Sequence record: PP793740.1
DNA: 64,000 bases
Direction: 5' to 3' (one strand)
Notes under the pieces: generated by a model
The model's database searches: none
The model's input: only the letters and a program-made list of their open reading frames with translations
Told to the model about the DNA's origin: nothing
Made by a program: the position numbers and the translations under genes
Shown here: positions 43,709 through 63,095 of the stretch, piece by piece
Numbering within the stretch: the first letter of the stretch is position 1
How the letters are laid out: every line of letters starts with the position of its first letter

Positions 43709-43726
43709 GCCTCCCCGAAGGGAGGC
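43709..43726 (-). terminator. Intrinsic terminator, UUCG loop
   Basis: GCCTCCC-TTCG-GGGAGGC. Confidence 0.85.
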
Positions 43727-43732
43727 AATATG

Positions 43733-44425
43733 TTAATTACCACTATAGGTACCTTCAGTACCTTGTTCTTTACGCCGTACTAAGCGTTGATGAATTGCAC
43801 TAAGAGCACGATCCATTGAATTAATCACTACCTGATTCTCTTCACATGCAAATGGGCCTGTTTGGTAACCTTCAAATAAATCTTTAACGATTTTAATTAG
43901 ACAGTCAGCAGTTAGGCCATTTACACCAACTTCTGGAACAAGTCCATTCTGCATTAGGATAACACATTCAGTCAGGTTATCACCAGGCATAGCAGCTGGG
44001 TTAGTCTGAGCATTATAACCAGTTACCACATAACGTTTAGTTGCACCTGATTTCTGGTCAATGCCACTTGCTTCAATATTTAGACCATTTTCATCAAAAT
44101 GTTCATGGCCATAAATACCTTGCATAGTTACCCATCCACCATCTTCTTGATAAATCCAATCTACCCCATTTACATGATAAGTATCGCCTGGTTCAGGGTC
44201 AGCTGGAAGATCTTTAGTAGTGGTTAATGCACGGATACGCGCATATTCTTCAATTGCAATTTGTATATCAGTTGCAGTTATATTCTTCTCAGTTTCAGAA
44301 GCTTCGTCATGTTGTGATTTATCACTACCTTCCTTTTGGTCATTATCCATATCAGAAGCATCTACTGTACTTTTAGCTTCTTTACTTTCTAAGGAAGCTA
44401 ACCACTCAAGATTAGGTTTAGACAT
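43733..44425 (-). CDS. tad1: Tad1-family (Thoeris/CBASS signal sponge) domain with long acidic N-terminal extension (gp184-like)
   Basis: C-terminal QNG...GVNG...DCLIKIV.D....YQTGPFACEEN.......AL..I..R...R...GTEGT matches recalled Tad1 FQAGPFSSREN...[22 protein letters not shown]; start revised to MSKPN behind GAGG. Confidence 0.8.
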   Translation of the reverse strand: MSKPNLEWLASLESKEAKSTVDASDMDNDQKEGSDKSQHDEASETEKNITATDIQIAIEEYARIRALTTTKDLPADPEPGDTYHVNGVDWIYQEDGGWVTMQGIYGHEHFDENGLNIEASGIDQKSGATKRYVVTGYNAQTNPAAMPGDNLTECVILMQNGLVPEVGVNGLTADCLIKIVKDLFEGYQTGPFACEENQVVINSMDRALSAIHQRLVRRKEQGTEGTYSGN

Positions 44426-44432
44426 ACTTACC

Positions 44433-44738
44433 TCAATAAATGAAACCACCAATGTAAAGTGACACTACAACATCGGCAACCCGAGGGTCTTGTGAATATT
44501 TAGATTTGACTAGTTTAATAAGTTCGGCTCGATTTTTAATGAAGCCTAGTTTCTTATTATCAATTTCTTCAGCTTCAATTAGGAAGTCATTTAACTTCTT
44601 CTTACTACCCAGTACATTAATCACCATTTGATCAATAACTGCATTAGTATTTGATAGTTTAGTTAACTCTTGTTCAAAAACTTCCTTACGTCCTTCTGAT
44701 CCAATTAGAGCTAGACCGATCTTTTTAAGTAGAGACAT
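44433..44738 (-). CDS. Hypothetical protein
   Basis: AGGT RBS. Confidence 0.75.
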   Translation of the reverse strand: MSLLKKIGLALIGSEGRKEVFEQELTKLSNTNAVIDQMVINVLGSKKKLNDFLIEAEEIDNKKLGFIKNRAELIKLVKSKYSQDPRVADVVVSLYIGGFIY

Positions 44739-44796: not shown

Positions 44797-53569
<8,773 letters not shown>

Positions 53570-53632: not shown

Positions 53633-55285
53633 ATGAAGAAGGCATTAGTTCCTTTTAATATTTCTTTACTTATTCCCACTAAAGAACAATTAAAGTTCTT
53701 AGGTCAAGTAAAGAGTCATGAGATATTTGAAGGTTTAGGTGGTAACTTTCATGAAGATGGTTTGTTCTCTGTTTCCATTTTTGGAAGAGTTGGATCAACT
53801 GATCGTGAGAGTTTATTTGGATATATTCATTTAGGTTTAGAACTTATCCATCCAGCTGTATATCGAAACTTAATTAAATTAAAAGCTTTCTATGAAGAAA
53901 TTATTCTTGGTAAGGCATTTGCAGTATTTGACGAATCTATTAAAGATTTTATCCGCGCCGATGAACTAACTGGTAAAACTGGTTATACATTCTTTTTTGA
54001 TAACTGGAAACGAATTGACTTTGGGTCCACTAAGTCAGGGGTTCGGCTATCAAGGTTACAATTAATCGAAAAATATAAAGATAACTGTATTTTTAAAGAC
54101 ATGCTTGTAACACCAGCCGCTTATCGTGATGCAGAGATTGATGAGAATAATCGTGTTGAGATGGATGAGATCAATGAACACTATAGGTATCTATTAAATC
54201 AGTCGTTTGGTGTACCTGATAGCTTTGGACCAAATGATGACTTGAGTATCTATGATCGCAAACGAGTAGCAATGCAAAACACCGTATTAGCTATTTATGA
54301 ACATTATGAACGACTGCTATCCGGTAAACGTGGATACATTCAATCTAAATGGGCATCCCGTCGTATTGCCAATGGTACACGTAACGTCATTAGTTCGCTA
54401 GATACTAATGCTGCTGATCTTGATTCACCTAATCGACCAACATTCAAAGATGCCGTAGTTGGCTTACATCAAGCAGCTCGTTCAGTTGCACCGCGTACAA
54501 TCTTTGCACTAAGGCAAGGTGTAGTTGGTGAAGTGTTTGATACAGTTACTAACACTGTACAGCTCATCAATAAGAAAACACTACGTTTAGAATGGGTCGA
54601 TATCTCTAACGAAGATATGGATTTATGGGGAACTCCTGAAGGGCAAGAACAAATCATCAATGAGTTAGATGTCATTGAAAAACGTTCACGTGCAATTGAA
54701 ATTGCTGATCATTATCTAGCCCTTATTTACGTTGATGATAAACAGAATTTTAAAATATTCCGCAACATCGATGAGTTACCTACTAATCTAAATAAGAAAT
54801 TTGTTAGACCTATTACTTATGCCGAATTAGTTTACCTTAGTGGATTAAGTATGTGGCGAACAAACTCAGCGTTTGTTACACGATATCCTGTAGAAAACTA
54901 CAATAGCTCTATCCCCTGTAAGATATATGTTAAAACAACCGTAGTGGGTGAATTACGTTATCCGTTAAATGATCAATGGGAACGTGATGATACGTTGGAA
55001 CCAGCCTTAGAATTCCCTGTGTTTGAATTAAATAAACCAGCCCAGTGGCATGACTCAGTATCCATCTCTCCTTCTATTCTCGCGCCATTGGGGGCGGATT
55101 TCGACGGGGACACTGTATCATTTAACGCAGTTTATTCAGAGGAAGCTATCGCTGAAACAGATGCTTTCTTTAAGAAACGTATTGCATATATACATGCCGA
55201 TGGTCGACTGGCATTTAGTGTTGGTATCCATACACTCAATTTAACTCTTCGGTACATGACTGGGGAACCCAAACAAAGGGATTAA
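53633..55285 (+). CDS. rpoC: Virion RNA polymerase beta' N-terminal subunit (gp180-like)
   Basis: GLFSVSIFG, GKRGYIQ, catalytic GADFDGD motif. Confidence 0.93.
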   Translation: MKKALVPFNISLLIPTKEQLKFLGQVKSHEIFEGLGGNFHEDGLFSVSIFGRVGSTDRESLFGYIHLGLELIHPAVYRNLIKLKAFYEEIILGKAFAVFDESIKDFIRADELTGKTGYTFFFDNWKRIDFGSTKSGVRLSRLQLIEKYKDNCIFKDMLVTPAAYRDAEIDENNRVEMDEINEHYRYLLNQSFGVPDSFGPNDDLSIYDRKRVAMQNTVLAIYEHYERLLSGKRGYIQSKWASRRIANGTRNVISSLDTNAADLDSPNRPTFKDAVVGLHQAARSVAPRTIFALRQGVVGEVFDTVTNTVQLINKKTLRLEWVDISNEDMDLWGTPEGQEQIINELDVIEKRSRAIEIADHYLALIYVDDKQNFKIFRNIDELPTNLNKKFVRPITYAELVYLSGLSMWRTNSAFVTRYPVENYNSSIPCKIYVKTTVVGELRYPLNDQWERDDTLEPALEFPVFELNKPAQWHDSVSISPSILAPLGADFDGDTVSFNAVYSEEAIAETDAFFKKRIAYIHADGRLAFSVGIHTLNLTLRYMTGEPKQRD

Positions 55286-55287
55286 TC

Positions 55288-58200
55288 ATGCGCTTAAATA
55301 TTACACAGTTTCTGAAAAATTATAGTGTACGCGAATATGCTAAACTTCAGTCACCTAAGTTGCATGCTCTAAATAAACTTGATCTACCTTTCGAATCCAT
55401 TTATCAGTTCTTCGATGGTAATAATGCAGTAATGGGTCCTAGTCAAACAGACCCATTATTCTCCAAACATCAAGGTAAAGTATATATTGAGCATGTTACT
55501 GATATGCTTACATTTGAAGGTAATCCACGTAGGACTTCAAATATCCCAGCAACAATGATTCAAGAGTTTCGCCGCCAGAACCGTTTCTTTAAACCTTTAC
55601 GCAGTGATACCGGTTTTAAATTATCAAACCAGAACATTCTGGTAATGAATTATAATTTAATTAACCCTCAATGGAATTATATGGCTTCTTATAAAGCTAC
55701 ATGGTTCCGTTGGTCAAATGACATGCGTACATTCTGGAGTGGCGTAGCGGCTGCATGTGAACGTTTTCCTGGTTGGAACCAGTTCATTGATGTACACTTA
55801 CCTGAGTTAGTTCCACCTCCTTCTTCTTTTAATAAACTACGAGGGGGTTTAACTCAAGATCTAGCTAATCAATTCAATACACCTGATATTCTAAATATAT
55901 TTGATTTAGTTCGCTGGGTTTCTGATGATCGTGAAAGTTCTTTCATGAATGTCATCGATGCTAAGTATTACGGTAACATTAATCTTTTATTCCGTGTACA
56001 AAGTTCATTCTTTGTTATTAACTTAGGGATGCTTGATCAATGGCGTCGTGATCCAGAAATTAAAGATGATAAAGGTTATGATACCCAGCAAATAGCTAGG
56101 CGCCTTATTTCACTAGTATCAGCGATGGTTGAATATAACCAAGGTAATACTTCATTAATTAAAGAAGATACGCCTATCTTTAATGAAGATATTATTGTTG
56201 ATGAAGAAACTCCGGTTAGTTATGAAGAAGGTGAAGCAGAAGAGGTTGAGGATGTTGAGTCTAATAACGTTGAAGAAGAAGTAACTGAAGTTGATGTTAT
56301 TGATGATGTTCAATTTGACCCAACCAACTTAACTAACTTAATTGATATTGGCGTAATTGAGGTAACATATACCCCACCACCAGAAAGTGATCTTGAGGTA
56401 ACAAAGCTTATCATTGAAAAAGATCCACTGGAATCTTCACCTTCTCGCCAAATTAAAGAAGAGAAGGAACTCATTGTAACAGATGTACCAGAAGATGAGT
56501 TATTCATCAATACTGAAGTTGATGAAGAAGATAAACTAATCGATGCCATTAGAGCTAAAGCATACGACATGTATCGCGTGAATATGATTTCTGCGAATAC
56601 ATTCGAGCAAGCTCAAGAAGATTCGATTATGTATCGTCGTCTACCTGATCCATTTACCGATCCTAATGATGAATCAGTAGAACCTATGACGATCGCTGAG
56701 GCGATGGAATATCATCCAGATGATCTTAAGATTCCAGAAGACACCACTTTTGAAGATAAGCCAACCATTGTTGATAAATCAATGTTGGGTAGTAAGTTAA
56801 AAGCCATCCAACGCAAATACAACAAGGTCTTATTAAAGAAAGATATTTTAAACAGTGTGTTATCTGTTCAGAAACAAGGCGTATCAGTAACTAATTACAA
56901 AATTGAAACTGTACGCGATTCTAGTAACCATTACCAAATCCACAAAGTTACATTAAAGCCTATTCGTGGTAGAAGTTCACAAGTAATGTTCCGTATCCCT
57001 GTCATTGATAATGACGGTAGGTTCATGTCTAATGGGGTAACATATCGCCAACGTTTACAACGTGCTGATATTCCAATTCGTAAAGTTAATCCACGTAAAG
57101 TTGCATTGACCTCTTATTATAATAAGACCTTTGTGACCAGATCTGAACGTGCTGAAAACAACTTTGATAATTGGTTAATCAGAGCGATTACCAACCGTGC
57201 ATTAGATGGAAGTGATATGTCTGTACATTCAGTTACCTATGCTGAATTAGATCAATCCAACTATGTTCTACCAAGGGTGTACACTACTTTAGGAACAGCT
57301 TTTAAAGGCTTCCATAATCACCGTAATGTGTTCTATTTTAATTTCAAAGATCGTAATGAATTCTTTGCAAAACAAGGATTACATATCGAAGATTATGAAA
57401 CTGATGATTTGATAATGGTGGGGTTCAATGGCACTGATGCTATCTTGTTAGATAAGAATTCCATCTTTTACATGAAAACAGGTAATGAGCTAGAACCTAT
57501 TGGTACCATTACAGATATACTTGGCTTAGATCTAACCAAAGCGCCGTTAGAAGCTATTCTAATGTCAATTGGTGGTAAAGAGCTACCATTAGGTTTCATT
57601 TTAGCATATCACCATGGCTTAAACAATCTACTTAAGAAGTTGAATGTTAATTATCAGCGTCATCAGCGTGGTACCAGGATTGTTGTCAATAGTACGGATT
57701 ATACATTAGCGTTCGCTGATGAGATCCTAGTATTTGATCGAGCTGATTATAAAGCAATGCTTGTATTAAGTGGACTCAAACGTTATCATAAATCACTGCG
57801 GCGTTATTCTGTTTATGATTTCAATAAACGAGATGTTTACTTCAGGGTTCTTGAAGAAGCTGGATTAAGTAATAGATTTACACGTGATATTGATACACTC
57901 TTCTCAGCATGGGTCGATCCAATCACTGAGGGTCTACTCAAGGAGATGGGTGAACCAACTACTTTTGAAGGATTGCTTTATCGGTCTGTCGAGTTATTAA
58001 CGAACGACTGGAGTCCAGCAGAAGTAGATGGTGCATATATGCGCTATCGTGGTTATGAGCGCATGGCAGGGGCTATTTTTAATGAACTCAATAGAGCGGT
58101 ACGTGTATTTAATATGCGTAATGGTGGGTCAGTGCAAACTGTCGAGTTAGATCCACACGTGATCTGGCGCAAGATTGTACAAGATCCGACAGTAGCCACT

Positions 58201-59643
58201 ATTGAAGATTCTAACCCCATTGCAAATATCCGTGAACAAGAAGCGATGACTTATCGTGGAGATGGTGGACGCGGTCCAACTTCAATGGTTGCACGTACAC
58301 GTATTTACGGTGAAGCGGATGTTGGTGTGGTCAGTGAATCAACTGTGGACTCAGGTGACGTTGGTGTTATTGCTTACTTAGTACCTGATGCTAACTTTGT
58401 AAACATGCGTGGTGTTACGCGTATGTTTGATCCAAAGACAGATGGGCCAGCTAGACTACTCTCAACTAGTGCACTGCTTGGTGTTGCAACCGAACATGAT
58501 GACCCTAAGCGAATTAACTTTATCTCAATTCAGCAGCAGCAAGGTATTTATGCTGATGGGTATACAGTTACACCAGTTCGTACAGGCTATGAACAAATCA
58601 TAGCCCAAAGGACTAGTTCTATCTTTGCTGTAGCAGCAGAACAAGATGGTGAAGTTGTAGCTATTGATGAATATGGTATCCAAGTTAAATATGCTGATGG
58701 TAATGTATTTGGATATCAATTAGGTACAGTTCATGGCACAGCAGCTGGTGTTAACTACCCACACATTCTTGTTACCTCATTAAAGAAAGGTGATAAGTTT
58801 AAACGTGGAGATACTATCACATATAACAAACGTTATTTCTCTGAAGATAGGTATACGCCTGGGCAAGTATTATGGAAAGCCGGTTGTATGGCTGTTGTAG
58901 CATTTGATGATAACCTTGACACTTTAGAAGACGGTTCAGTTATTTCTGAAGACCTAGCTAAAAGGTTAAATACTCAAACAACTGCAATCAAGAATATCGA
59001 TGTTAGGTTTGATCAGACTATTCGAGATATGGTGAAAGTTGGGGATCATGTCGACTTAAATTCAATTCTATGTATAATTGAAGATCCTGAAACAGCTGCT
59101 CACTCACTATATGACGAGGCATCTATTGAGACATTACGCAAACTATCAGCATATTCGCCACGTGCTAAGCTCGTAGGTACAGTATCAAAGATTGAATGCT
59201 TCTATCATGGTGAAATAGACGATATGACACCAAGTTTACAAGCATTAGCTAATACGTCAGATAAACAACGCGCTGAACGAGCTAAATCATTGAAAGAACC
59301 TACTTTCACTGGACAAGTAGATGCTAACTATCGAGTGAAAGGACGAGCCTTAGAATATGACCACATGATTATTCGAGTGTATATCGATCATGATATCCCA
59401 TGTGGTGTTGGAGATAAAGGCGTAGTAGCTAACCAGATGAAAACGGTATTCTCCCGTGTAATGACTGGACGTAATGAAACTGAAGATGGCCGTAATATTG
59501 ATCTACTATTCGGTAATACATCGGTAGAAGAACGAATGGTTCTATCTCCTAAAATCATTGCTACAACAACTGGTATCTTGTGGGCAGCTGGAAAACATCT
59601 TGTAGCTGTATATAGAGGAAACACTAATGCAAAAGCTAAGTAA
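55288..59643 (+). CDS. rpoB: Virion RNA polymerase beta subunit (gp178-like)
   Basis: 1451 aa; EDGSVISEDLA, GDKGVVANQMKTV; adjacent to beta' fragment. Confidence 0.9.
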   Translation: MRLNITQFLKNYSVREYAKLQSPKLHALNKLDLPFESIYQFFDGNNAVMGPSQTDPLFSKHQGKVYIEHVTDMLTFEGNPRRTSNIPATMIQEFRRQNRFFKPLRSDTGFKLSNQNILVMNYNLINPQWNYMASYKATWFRWSNDMRTFWSGVAAACERFPGWNQFIDVHLPELVPPPSSFNKLRGGLTQDLANQFNTPDILNIFDLVRWVSDDRESSFMNVIDAKYYGNINLLFRVQSSFFVINLGMLDQWRRDPEIKDDKGYDTQQIARRLISLVSAMVEYNQGNTSLIKEDTPIFNEDIIVDEETPVSYEEGEAEEVEDVESNNVEEEVTEVDVIDDVQFDPTNLTNLIDIGVIEVTYTPPPESDLEVTKLIIEKDPLESSPSRQIKEEKELIVTDVPEDELFINTEVDEEDKLIDAIRAKAYDMYRVNMISANTFEQAQEDSIMYRRLPDPFTDPNDESVEPMTIAEAMEYHPDDLKIPEDTTFEDKPTIVDKSMLGSKLKAIQRKYNKVLLKKDILNSVLSVQKQGVSVTNYKIETVRDSSNHYQIHKVTLKPIRGRSSQVMFRIPVIDNDGRFMSNGVTYRQRLQRADIPIRKVNPRKVALTSYYNKTFVTRSERAENNFDNWLIRAITNRALDGSDMSVHSVTYAELDQSNYVLPRVYTTLGTAFKGFHNHRNVFYFNFKDRNEFFAKQGLHIEDYETDDLIMVGFNGTDAILLDKNSIFYMKTGNELEPIGTITDILGLDLTKAPLEAILMSIGGKELPLGFILAYHHGLNNLLKKLNVNYQRHQRGTRIVVNSTDYTLAFADEILVFDRADYKAMLVLSGLKRYHKSLRRYSVYDFNKRDVYFRVLEEAGLSNRFTRDIDTLFSAWVDPITEGLLKEMGEPTTFEGLLYRSVELLTNDWSPAEVDGAYMRYRGYERMAGAIFNELNRAVRVFNMRNGGSVQTVELDPHVIWRKIVQDPTVATIEDSNPIANIREQEAMTYRGDGGRGPTSMVARTRIYGEADVGVVSESTVDSGDVGVIAYLVPDANFVNMRGVTRMFDPKTDGPARLLSTSALLGVATEHDDPKRINFISIQQQQGIYADGYTVTPVRTGYEQIIAQRTSSIFAVAAEQDGEVVAIDEYGIQVKYADGNVFGYQLGTVHGTAAGVNYPHILVTSLKKGDKFKRGDTITYNKRYFSEDRYTPGQVLWKAGCMAVVAFDDNLDTLEDGSVISEDLAKRLNTQTTAIKNIDVRFDQTIRDMVKVGDHVDLNSILCIIEDPETAAHSLYDEASIETLRKLSAYSPRAKLVGTVSKIECFYHGEIDDMTPSLQALANTSDKQRAERAKSLKEPTFTGQVDANYRVKGRALEYDHMIIRVYIDHDIPCGVGDKGVVANQMKTVFSRVMTGRNETEDGRNIDLLFGNTSVEERMVLSPKIIATTTGILWAAGKHLVAVYRGNTNAKAK

Positions 59644-62282: not shown

Positions 62283-63095
62283 ATGCAACCATATTCTAAT
62301 TTTTCTGGTTTGCAACAGCGTACTAATAACCAAGTAGTTATCGGCAGTGATATGTTAGCCGGTACTAATAAAAAAGGTGTATTAGTACCTGATGCGGATG
62401 GTTACTATCTAACTCCACTAGGAGCTTATGGTACCCGAAATTCAGCTGGTATGTTCTATGAAATGGCATCCGGCGTATCTATGTTTAATCCAGACTCACC
62501 TTTAATGCGCCGTGTTAAAAAGGGTGTTCTATTCATGGAATACAAACACCCTGAACCCTATCGTAAAGATGGCACACGGATGAATGAACATGAGTACCTA
62601 ATGCGAATTCGTCAAATCGATGATGATCGTGTGTGTGCGCATATTAAGGAACTTATTCTGGTTGATTCTACAGATGAGAAAGGTCTTCCTATTAAACTAG
62701 TACTTGGCAAATGCAAACCATACGGTCCTTTTGGTAAGTACTTCGAAGCATCTATTACCAATCCTTCTCAGAATACTTATTGCTCGGTAAGGTCAATAAC
62801 TCAAGATGATCCTATGCGCGGTATCAAATATACCCGTGAGATTTCAACTTGGGATATGGTTGGGGAAGGTGGTATTTACGGTGCTAATAAATGGAATTCC
62901 CCTGCATTAGAGAACTATGAAGATCAATTAATGGTTATCACGCCTGATACTCTATATCAGGTACAGCGTGAACGTGAACGTCAAATTAACATGGGTTTTG
63001 AATGTTCTGATATCACCAATGTGACAGATCTAGCGAAAAGTCTTGGCTGGGATATATCACCAGTTAAACATAGGCGCCCTGGCTTCATGCGTTAA
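62283..63095 (+). CDS. Prohead maturation protease (phiKZ gp175-like)
   Basis: 270 aa; CAHI and STWDMV motifs; C-terminal PALE self-cleavage-type site; synteny. Confidence 0.85.
   Translation: MQPYSNFSGLQQRTNNQVVIGSDMLAGTNKKGVLVPDADGYYLTPLGAYGTRNSAGMFYEMASGVSMFNPDSPLMRRVKKGVLFMEYKHPEPYRKDGTRMNEHEYLMRIRQIDDDRVCAHIKELILVDSTDEKGLPIKLVLGKCKPYGPFGKYFEASITNPSQNTYCSVRSITQDDPMRGIKYTREISTWDMVGEGGIYGANKWNSPALENYEDQLMVITPDTLYQVQRERERQINMGFECSDITNVTDLAKSLGWDISPVKHRRPGFMR

Follow-up and report, generated by a model that had tools for sequence, protein, structure and literature searches.

The internal proteins of phage T4, such as the injected anti-restriction protein IPI*, carry an N-terminal capsid-targeting leader that the head protease removes after a glutamate, and they travel inside the head and enter the host along with the DNA as a ready-made counter-defence. 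Much the same would apply to gp184 of the Pseudomonas jumbo phage phiKZ, for which the packaging of a Tad1 immune-signal sponge is established, although the T4 proteins are unrelated to it, are matured by a different member of the protease family, have no anchor in the shell and act on a nuclease, as inhibitors, instead of binding small molecules. The canonical Tad1 proteins, from a C. botulinum prophage (7UAV, 7UAW, 8SMD) and CmTad1 (8KBB), are solo proteins of ~125 amino acids (aa) without an N-terminal extension, and we know of no solo Tad1 protein that is virion-borne. Here we analyse a stretch of 64,000 nucleotides from sequence record PP793740.1 (the whole of it is called the window below), in which a gene on the minus strand at 43733..44425 encodes a 230-aa Tad1 protein with a long N-terminal half. 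With a probability of about 85%, we read it as the orthologue of phiKZ gp184, that is, as a Tad1 immune-signal sponge whose precursor form brings along its own device for delivery through the capsid. The idea of a packaged sponge, put forward in an earlier note on this DNA, is thus supported, yet it is already known for phiKZ gp184, to which the window adds one more member; the note had rightly suspected that the phiKZ counterpart might have been described, since gp184 has been published as a virion protein that is processed and injected and as a Tad1 protein. What is new here is a small beta module, apparently portable, that would hold the precursor in the capsid, together with the finding that N-terminally extended Tad1 proteins are common.

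In the phiKZ virion, gp184 lies on the inner capsid surface, is described as consisting mainly of beta-strands and fills the gap between gp86 and one subunit of the major capsid protein (MCP) in the vertex-adjacent hexamer; each vertex has five vertex-binding complexes with one gp184 in each (PMC11297242). That report also gives gp184 previously verified cleavage sites for the head protease gp175 and leaves large parts of the protein unresolved in the map. When gp184 was tagged C-terminally with 3xFLAG, the virion-packaged protein was detected in translation-blocked cells after infection, and the same study counts gp184 among the interactors of the inner body (PMC10449902); the supplements of this study hold constructs and blots for PHIKZ184 and no peptides. 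A transposon sequencing (TnSeq) preprint names gp184 Tad1, finds it to be non-essential and proposes a model in which the N-terminus is wedged in the capsid while the C-terminus is freed by the head protease and injected (PMC12676376), and a 2026 review states that phiKZ injects Tad1, which blocks the cyclic-oligonucleotide-based antiphage signalling system (CBASS) and Thoeris (PMC13282480). Both papers credit the sponge activity of the phiKZ protein to Li et al. 2024; phiKZ does not figure in the preprint that Li et al. posted in 2023. PHIKZ184 is annotated as a 'structural protein' (NC_004629), and its homologue in phage 201phi2-1 as 'identified using mass spectrometry'. Papers on 'gp184' of Psa21 or 'gp280' of phiKZ deal with other proteins and were set aside as irrelevant.

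The window gene is 96.1% identical to PHIKZ184 in its DNA and ~96% identical in its protein, which has the same length of 230 aa, and a phmmer search of the PDB matched chain 8y6v_I ('gp184' of the phiKZ capsid structure) along residues 1-230 (E 1.7e-150). The two proteins agree in the three parts of the N-terminal half and in the Tad1 domain, and their genes lie among the same neighbours, the homologues of gp181-gp188: the order in the window follows phiKZ gp175 to gp188, with synteny to PHIKZ181-188. Nine amino-acid differences separate them, of which six fall in residues 1-63, one in residues 64-108 and two in residues 109-230, and the synonymous codon differences in the same three intervals number eight, one and seven; the Tad1 domain, with two non-synonymous to seven synonymous changes, has therefore taken few non-synonymous changes, against six to eight in the pro-region. 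No functional difference from phiKZ gp184 is expected, and by its orthology to the capsid-resident protein the window protein would likewise be present in the virion. That the sponge is loaded into the capsid, matured by the protease and delivered with the DNA, as the earlier note had proposed, is supported in each of its elements, by the present analysis or by published work on this close relative. The 2-kb region around the gene is 100% identical in DNA to Pseudomonas phage vB_PaM_W10-2 and matches 47 phiKZ-like genomes at an identity of at least 90%, the gene alone reaching at least 95% in the same genomes. The window is DNA of a phiKZ-like Pseudomonas jumbo phage, and the arrangement of the Tad1 gene is fixed across the 47 phiKZ-like genomes of the phage collection.

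The C-terminal half of the protein, residues 109-230 (43736..44101, minus strand), is a Tad1 domain by sequence, by profile and by fold, with a beta-sheet, two long helices, a ligand pocket and a C-terminal G-T-E-G-T lid. A phmmer search of the PDB with the protein alone matched the Tad1 chains 8KBB, 8KBE, 8KBG, 8KBH and 7UAV to residues 117-226 at E 9e-7 to 3e-5, and a profile of 80 relatives found the same chains at E 5e-23 to 4e-21, with matches that span residues 9-124 of a 125-aa chain; beyond gp184 and Tad1, this profile search of the PDB gave no match at E <=0.01. The AlphaFold2 model used throughout was built on the 80-sequence alignment, the single-sequence model being too poor (mean predicted local distance difference test score, pLDDT, 41.6), and it reaches a pLDDT of >90 for residues 112-230. 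Its strands at 110-112, 115-122, 129-135 and 154-158 and its helices at 173-189 and 195-220 follow the Tad1 order of a sheet and then two helices, and when this model was searched against the PDB with Foldseek, the top 20 matches were all Tad1 (E 2e-8 to 2e-6, TM 0.70-0.76). Relatives of the protein carry a precomputed match to Pfam PF24729 (Acb2_Tad1_hairpin); scans of the 230-aa protein itself against Pfam and NCBIfam returned nothing useful, PF24729 being a family that the local copy of Pfam fails to report. The assignment of the C-terminus to Tad1 in the earlier note therefore holds by profile as well as by structure search, and the motifs on which it had been based are in the translation (G190-P-F192, E196-N197, A207-L208, R214 and R218, G225-T226); only the length of ~110 aa given for the domain has to be corrected, to ~120 residues (109/112-230).

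Residues known to contact ligands were mapped onto the window protein through the HMMER alignment with the Tad1 chains. The reference was the preprint of Li et al., where the pocket of CbTad1 for glycocyclic ADP-ribose (gcADPR) and cyclic dinucleotides is formed by F82, N92, R109 and R113, and the contacts to cyclic trinucleotides by R90/T97 in CbTad1 and R88/T95 in CmTad1 (bioRxiv 10.1101/2023.11.15.567273). The four pocket residues are all kept, aligning with Y187, N197, R214 and R218, and the C-terminal lid aligns with G222-T226, so that the window protein resembles the canonical solo proteins in fold, pocket and lid. In 272 family members, a retrieved subset that is biased toward the query, the pocket columns are near-invariant, with Asn in 271/271, Arg in 270/271 and 265/267 at its two columns, and Phe or Tyr in 263/270. 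The trinucleotide site differs: where the solo proteins have Arg and Thr, the window protein has E195 and N202 (codons within 43736..44101), so both contacts are replaced. Across the 272 relatives Arg is a minority state of the first trinucleotide column, with 27 Arg to 105 Glu; the R90/T97 site is a feature of the studied Tad1 members and not of the whole family. As far as can be told from these alignments, the protein probably binds gcADPR and cyclic dinucleotides and probably does not bind ligands of the cyclic triadenylate (cA3) type, because the two residues that contact cyclic trinucleotides are replaced. This prediction fits the report that added Acb2, which sequesters cyclic AAA (cAAA), rescues a phiKZ mutant on a host with NucC CBASS (PMC12676376).

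Most of the CmTad1 hexamer-interface residues that the preprint names are also replaced in the window protein. Together with the loss of the trinucleotide contacts, with ligand binding that is here deduced from sequence, and with the place of gp184 in the vertex-binding complex (PMC11297242), this could be taken to mean that the protein is purely a minor capsid protein, a cement whose Tad1-like domain is a structural relic without sponge activity. We consider this very improbable. A relic would hardly be expected to keep all four pocket residues and the lid while taking so few non-synonymous changes, and the part of gp184 that is visible in the shell, as placed below, is not the Tad1 domain. 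The gene is moreover dispensable for growth (PMC12676376), unlike a core structural part, and two later papers credit gp184 with Tad1 activity (PMC12676376, PMC13282480). A sponge that is carried in the virion, rather than a cement protein, remains the reading that we prefer, and the N-terminal half is where its delivery device would be found.

This half consists of three parts. A leader of 13 residues (44387..44425, minus strand), which may be a targeting peptide, ends in S11-L12-E13, a candidate for the first protease cut; it is followed by an acidic, mostly disordered pro-region, residues 14-63 (44237..44386, minus strand), with the sites S14-K-E16, A42-S-E44 and A57-I-E59, and by a beta-strand module that is the putative capsid anchor, residues 64-108 (44102..44236, minus strand), with G106-H107-E108 at its end as the candidate cut that would free the sponge. 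In the AlphaFold2 model, residues 1-46 are disordered (pLDDT <50) save for a low-confidence short helix at 7-13, a helix lies at 51-62, and the beta module has predicted strands at 65-67, 82-85, 88-92 and 98-100 with a pLDDT of ~77-80, after which comes a predicted low-confidence hinge at residues 103-107. The acidity is marked, with 25 Asp and Glu to 9 Lys and Arg in residues 1-111 and 16 to 6 in residues 1-60. The earlier note had seen in this half an acidic propeptide with three protease sites and a short module ending in GGW, and all of these are in the translation (S11-L-E13, A42-S-E44 and A57-I-E59; PADPEPGD...GGW at residues 74-98). An acidic and processed propeptide is nevertheless only part of what is encoded there, since the N-terminal half also holds the beta module that would be retained in the capsid, and the site at the domain boundary, G106-H-E108, had been missed.

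The part of gp184 that is seen in the capsid map points to the same module. Chain 8y6v_I contributes only 34 residues, which are 97% identical to the window protein, the root-mean-square deviation being 1.4 A in the Foldseek match. One mismatch in 34 residues allows few placements, and only one of these is rich in beta-strands, so we infer that the capsid-resident piece is the beta module and lies within residues 55-108. The possibility that the fragment belongs to the Tad1 domain was considered and rejected, as it conflicts both with the one-mismatch constraint and with the description of the capsid-bound protein as mainly beta-strands.

The enzyme that would be expected to process the precursor is encoded in the window, as the earlier note had stated: the open reading frame (ORF) at 62283..63095 on the plus strand matches phrog_3014 'head maturation protease' (E 3e-90) and is identical to phiKZ gp175, itself annotated as the head maturation protease (NC_004629), at all 231 of the 231 residues in the part compared. 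In the PDB no sequence relative of this protease was found. Its cleavage motif has been given as S/A/G-x-E, with LSxE as a refinement (PMC10449902), and residues 1-108 of the Tad1 precursor hold five such sites, ending at E13, E16, E44, E59 and E108. Among 38 long homologues, the column of E13 has Glu in 36, Leu at -1 in 31, Gly or Ser at -2 in 31 and Trp at -5 in 30, and the leader site is complete at this column in 12 of the 16 clusters formed at 70% identity. It is the conservation of the sites in place, and not their number, that exceeds chance. In most of the long homologues an S/A/G-x-E site also lies 0-12 residues ahead of the Tad1 domain; in the window protein this is G106-H-E108, in the hinge. 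The sponge would most likely be set free by a cut after E108, because the module is kept together with its terminal G-x-E where it is joined to other cargo, and because a protein of phage Psa21 that consists of the anchor alone ends at this point.

From these elements a route into the cell can be proposed. The precursor would be taken into the procapsid, where the beta module would dock between gp86 and the centre of the vertex-adjacent hexamer; the head protease would then trim the leader after E13 and cut after E108 at the disordered hinge, which would leave the module in the shell within the vertex-binding complex and release into the head a Tad1 domain of 13.2 kDa. This domain would exit with the DNA and could bind the earliest signal molecules at a time when no phage gene has yet been expressed. 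Since there are five complexes per vertex and one gp184 in each, one copy per vertex-binding complex would amount to ~55-60 anchored copies per virion, with about as many ligand sites, which would make the sponge a small early buffer rather than a bulk sink. A similar route is known for phiKZ gp93 and other inner-body proteins (PF12699, phiKZ_IP), in which the N-terminus is woven into the capsid, the protease cuts and the C-terminus is injected (PMC11297242, PMC12676376, PMC10449902); their cargo, however, is a helical internal-head-protein domain and no nucleotide sponge, and their anchor is fibre-like instead of a small beta module.

Several points weigh against this picture. All of the experimental support is carried over from the phiKZ protein at ~96% identity and none of it comes from the window phage; the blot that documents the injection of gp184 has n = 1 (PMC10449902); and the residue range of 8y6v_I was deduced here instead of being taken from coordinates. 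The copy estimate leaves aside unanchored gp184, which, given that the protein is an inner-body interactor, may add to it. The number of protease sites does not exceed chance, the five sites comparing with 2.6 +/- 1.35 when these residues are shuffled, and 8% of the shuffles reaching five, and we have consequently rejected the count as evidence in itself. Finally, the cleavage product of gp184 is stated to be longer than the portion that was modelled (PMC11297242), and this would also fit a single cut at E13 or E59 that leaves the Tad1 domain tethered.

This last point leads to an alternative in which the protein is packaged and no release at E108 takes place: the anchored copies would stay tethered as filler of the vertex complex, while the injected copies would come from an unanchored inner-body pool, or the sponge would act mainly after new synthesis. 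The detection of gp184 as an inner-body interactor (PMC10449902) is in keeping with such a pool, and the ~200-aa homologues of PhiPA3 and 201phi2-1 are virion-associated even though they have no beta module, so that anchoring is not required for packaging. We nevertheless regard permanent tethering as unlikely, with a probability of roughly one in eight, for the G-x-E lies exactly at the module boundary in a hinge (103-107) that is predicted to be disordered, it is retained where the cargo differs (HHBS36_1, PhiPA3), and the anchor-only protein of Psa21 stops at just that point. The TnSeq preprint also has the C-termini liberated by the head protease and injected (PMC12676376). Release of the Tad1 domain after E108 and its injection thus remains the course of events that we favour.

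If a counter-defence protein enters ready-made together with the DNA, it can act while the alarm molecules of the host have yet to accumulate, and for a nucleus-forming jumbo phage it covers the first minutes of infection, which are otherwise unprotected. The modular anchor, the predicted cut at the domain boundary and the missing trinucleotide-contact residues may in addition serve as guides for reading the genomes of other jumbo phages.

The closest relatives with a different architecture are the ~200-aa Tad1 proteins of PhiPA3 (gp215/'217') and 201phi2-1 (gp280; phrog_23843), whose domains are 54-58% identical to that of the window protein and whose genes have the same synteny. They share the leader with its W-x-x-G/S-L-E site, the acidic linker and a further S/A/G-x-E site ~10 residues ahead of the domain, but they differ in having no beta anchor module. 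In PhiPA3 and in PA1C-like phages the module is placed in other proteins instead. It is 68% identical to residues 51-96 of the 896-aa internal head protein of the PA1C-like phage HHBS36_1 (locus L003, 1099..3789), the terminal G-x-E included, with a PF12699 (internal-head-protein) domain making up the remainder of the 896 aa; it is 54% identical to residues 181-235 of PhiPA3 gp096 (321 aa; locus L004, 4443..5408), a virion structural protein from the inner-body gene cluster of a phage whose Tad1 homologue lacks the module; and a further module protein is found in PA1C itself (locus L013, 3387..4382). In Psa21 the module stands alone: gp249, of 91 aa (locus L012, 2357..2632, syntenic with the gp184 locus), consists of an N-terminal stretch and the beta module, its final residue aligns with H107, and its neighbour is 66% identical to the gp182 homologue of the window.

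We speculate, at somewhat less than even odds, that the beta module and its terminal G-x-E form a portable cassette with which a protein can dock in the capsid and then be released, and that the delivery of sponges by the virion arose several times. On this tentative account, phiKZ-like phages would have joined Tad1 to the module exactly at the protease site, Psa21 would have the module by itself, and PhiPA3 and the PA1C-like phages would have used it for other cargo. Other N-terminal devices stand ahead of Tad1 domains as well, namely the leader with an acidic linker in PhiPA3 and 201phi2-1 and, in uncultivated jumbo phages, a copy of the MCP insertion domain. If the account is true, new counter-defence proteins that are injected could be sought among the unknown cargo of these anchors.

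N-terminally extended Tad1 proteins are common. An exhaustive HMMER search with the Tad1 domain gave 2060 clusters at E <=0.001, and among the 272 sequences of the retrieved subset 77 have at least 60 residues ahead of the domain, most of these extensions being acidic. In three long Tad1 proteins (P0244, P0167 and P0208; 346-484 aa) the N-terminus is a homologue of the phiKZ MCP insertion domain: all three match Pfam PF25620, and residues 16-191 of P0208 align with residues 263-471 of gp120. P0244 lies on a 252-kb metagenomic contig (locus L006, 10001..11455), where a nearby 206-aa gene has a faint MCP match. An origin of these N-termini from the MCP propeptide was rejected, as the alignment is with the insertion domain.

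Some other Tad1 proteins carry structural annotations. The homologues of several Bacillus Herelleviridae phages (H186, H187, H194, H195, H197-H199 and H202) are annotated as 'structural protein', and so is a Tad1-like protein from Klebsiella phage Eowyn with 145 aa (BFVD A0A7R8MJE9). Judging by such annotations alone, virion association of Tad1 may not be limited to the relatives of phiKZ.

At the locus itself, the ORF of the Tad1 gene begins with an ATG at 44425 and runs for 230 codons to a stop codon at 43733..43735. A GAGG that reads as its ribosome-binding site (44431..44434, minus strand) lies 5 bases upstream of the ATG, where it shares bases with the TGA that ends the preceding gene, the homologue of gp183 (44433..44738, 101 aa). 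Directly 3' of the Tad1 stop codon is a terminator-like hairpin (43709..43726, minus strand) of seven pairs, six of them G-C, with a T-rich tail, and a second terminator-like hairpin (46812..46839, minus strand) lies upstream of the gp182 homologue. The two hairpins bracket the homologues of gp182, gp183 and gp184, which suggests that the three genes form one transcription unit.

A separate difference from phiKZ was seen elsewhere in the window. The gene of the virion RNA-polymerase beta-subunit (53633..55285, plus strand) is a continuous ORF of 550 aa that abuts the gp178 homologue (55288..59643, plus strand). In phiKZ, gp180 is annotated with a length of 490 aa, and the HNH endonuclease gp179 (Pfam HNH_3, E 7e-9) comes next (locus L001, 29902..37358); the uninterrupted ORF implies that the window phage is free of the gp179 HNH insertion.

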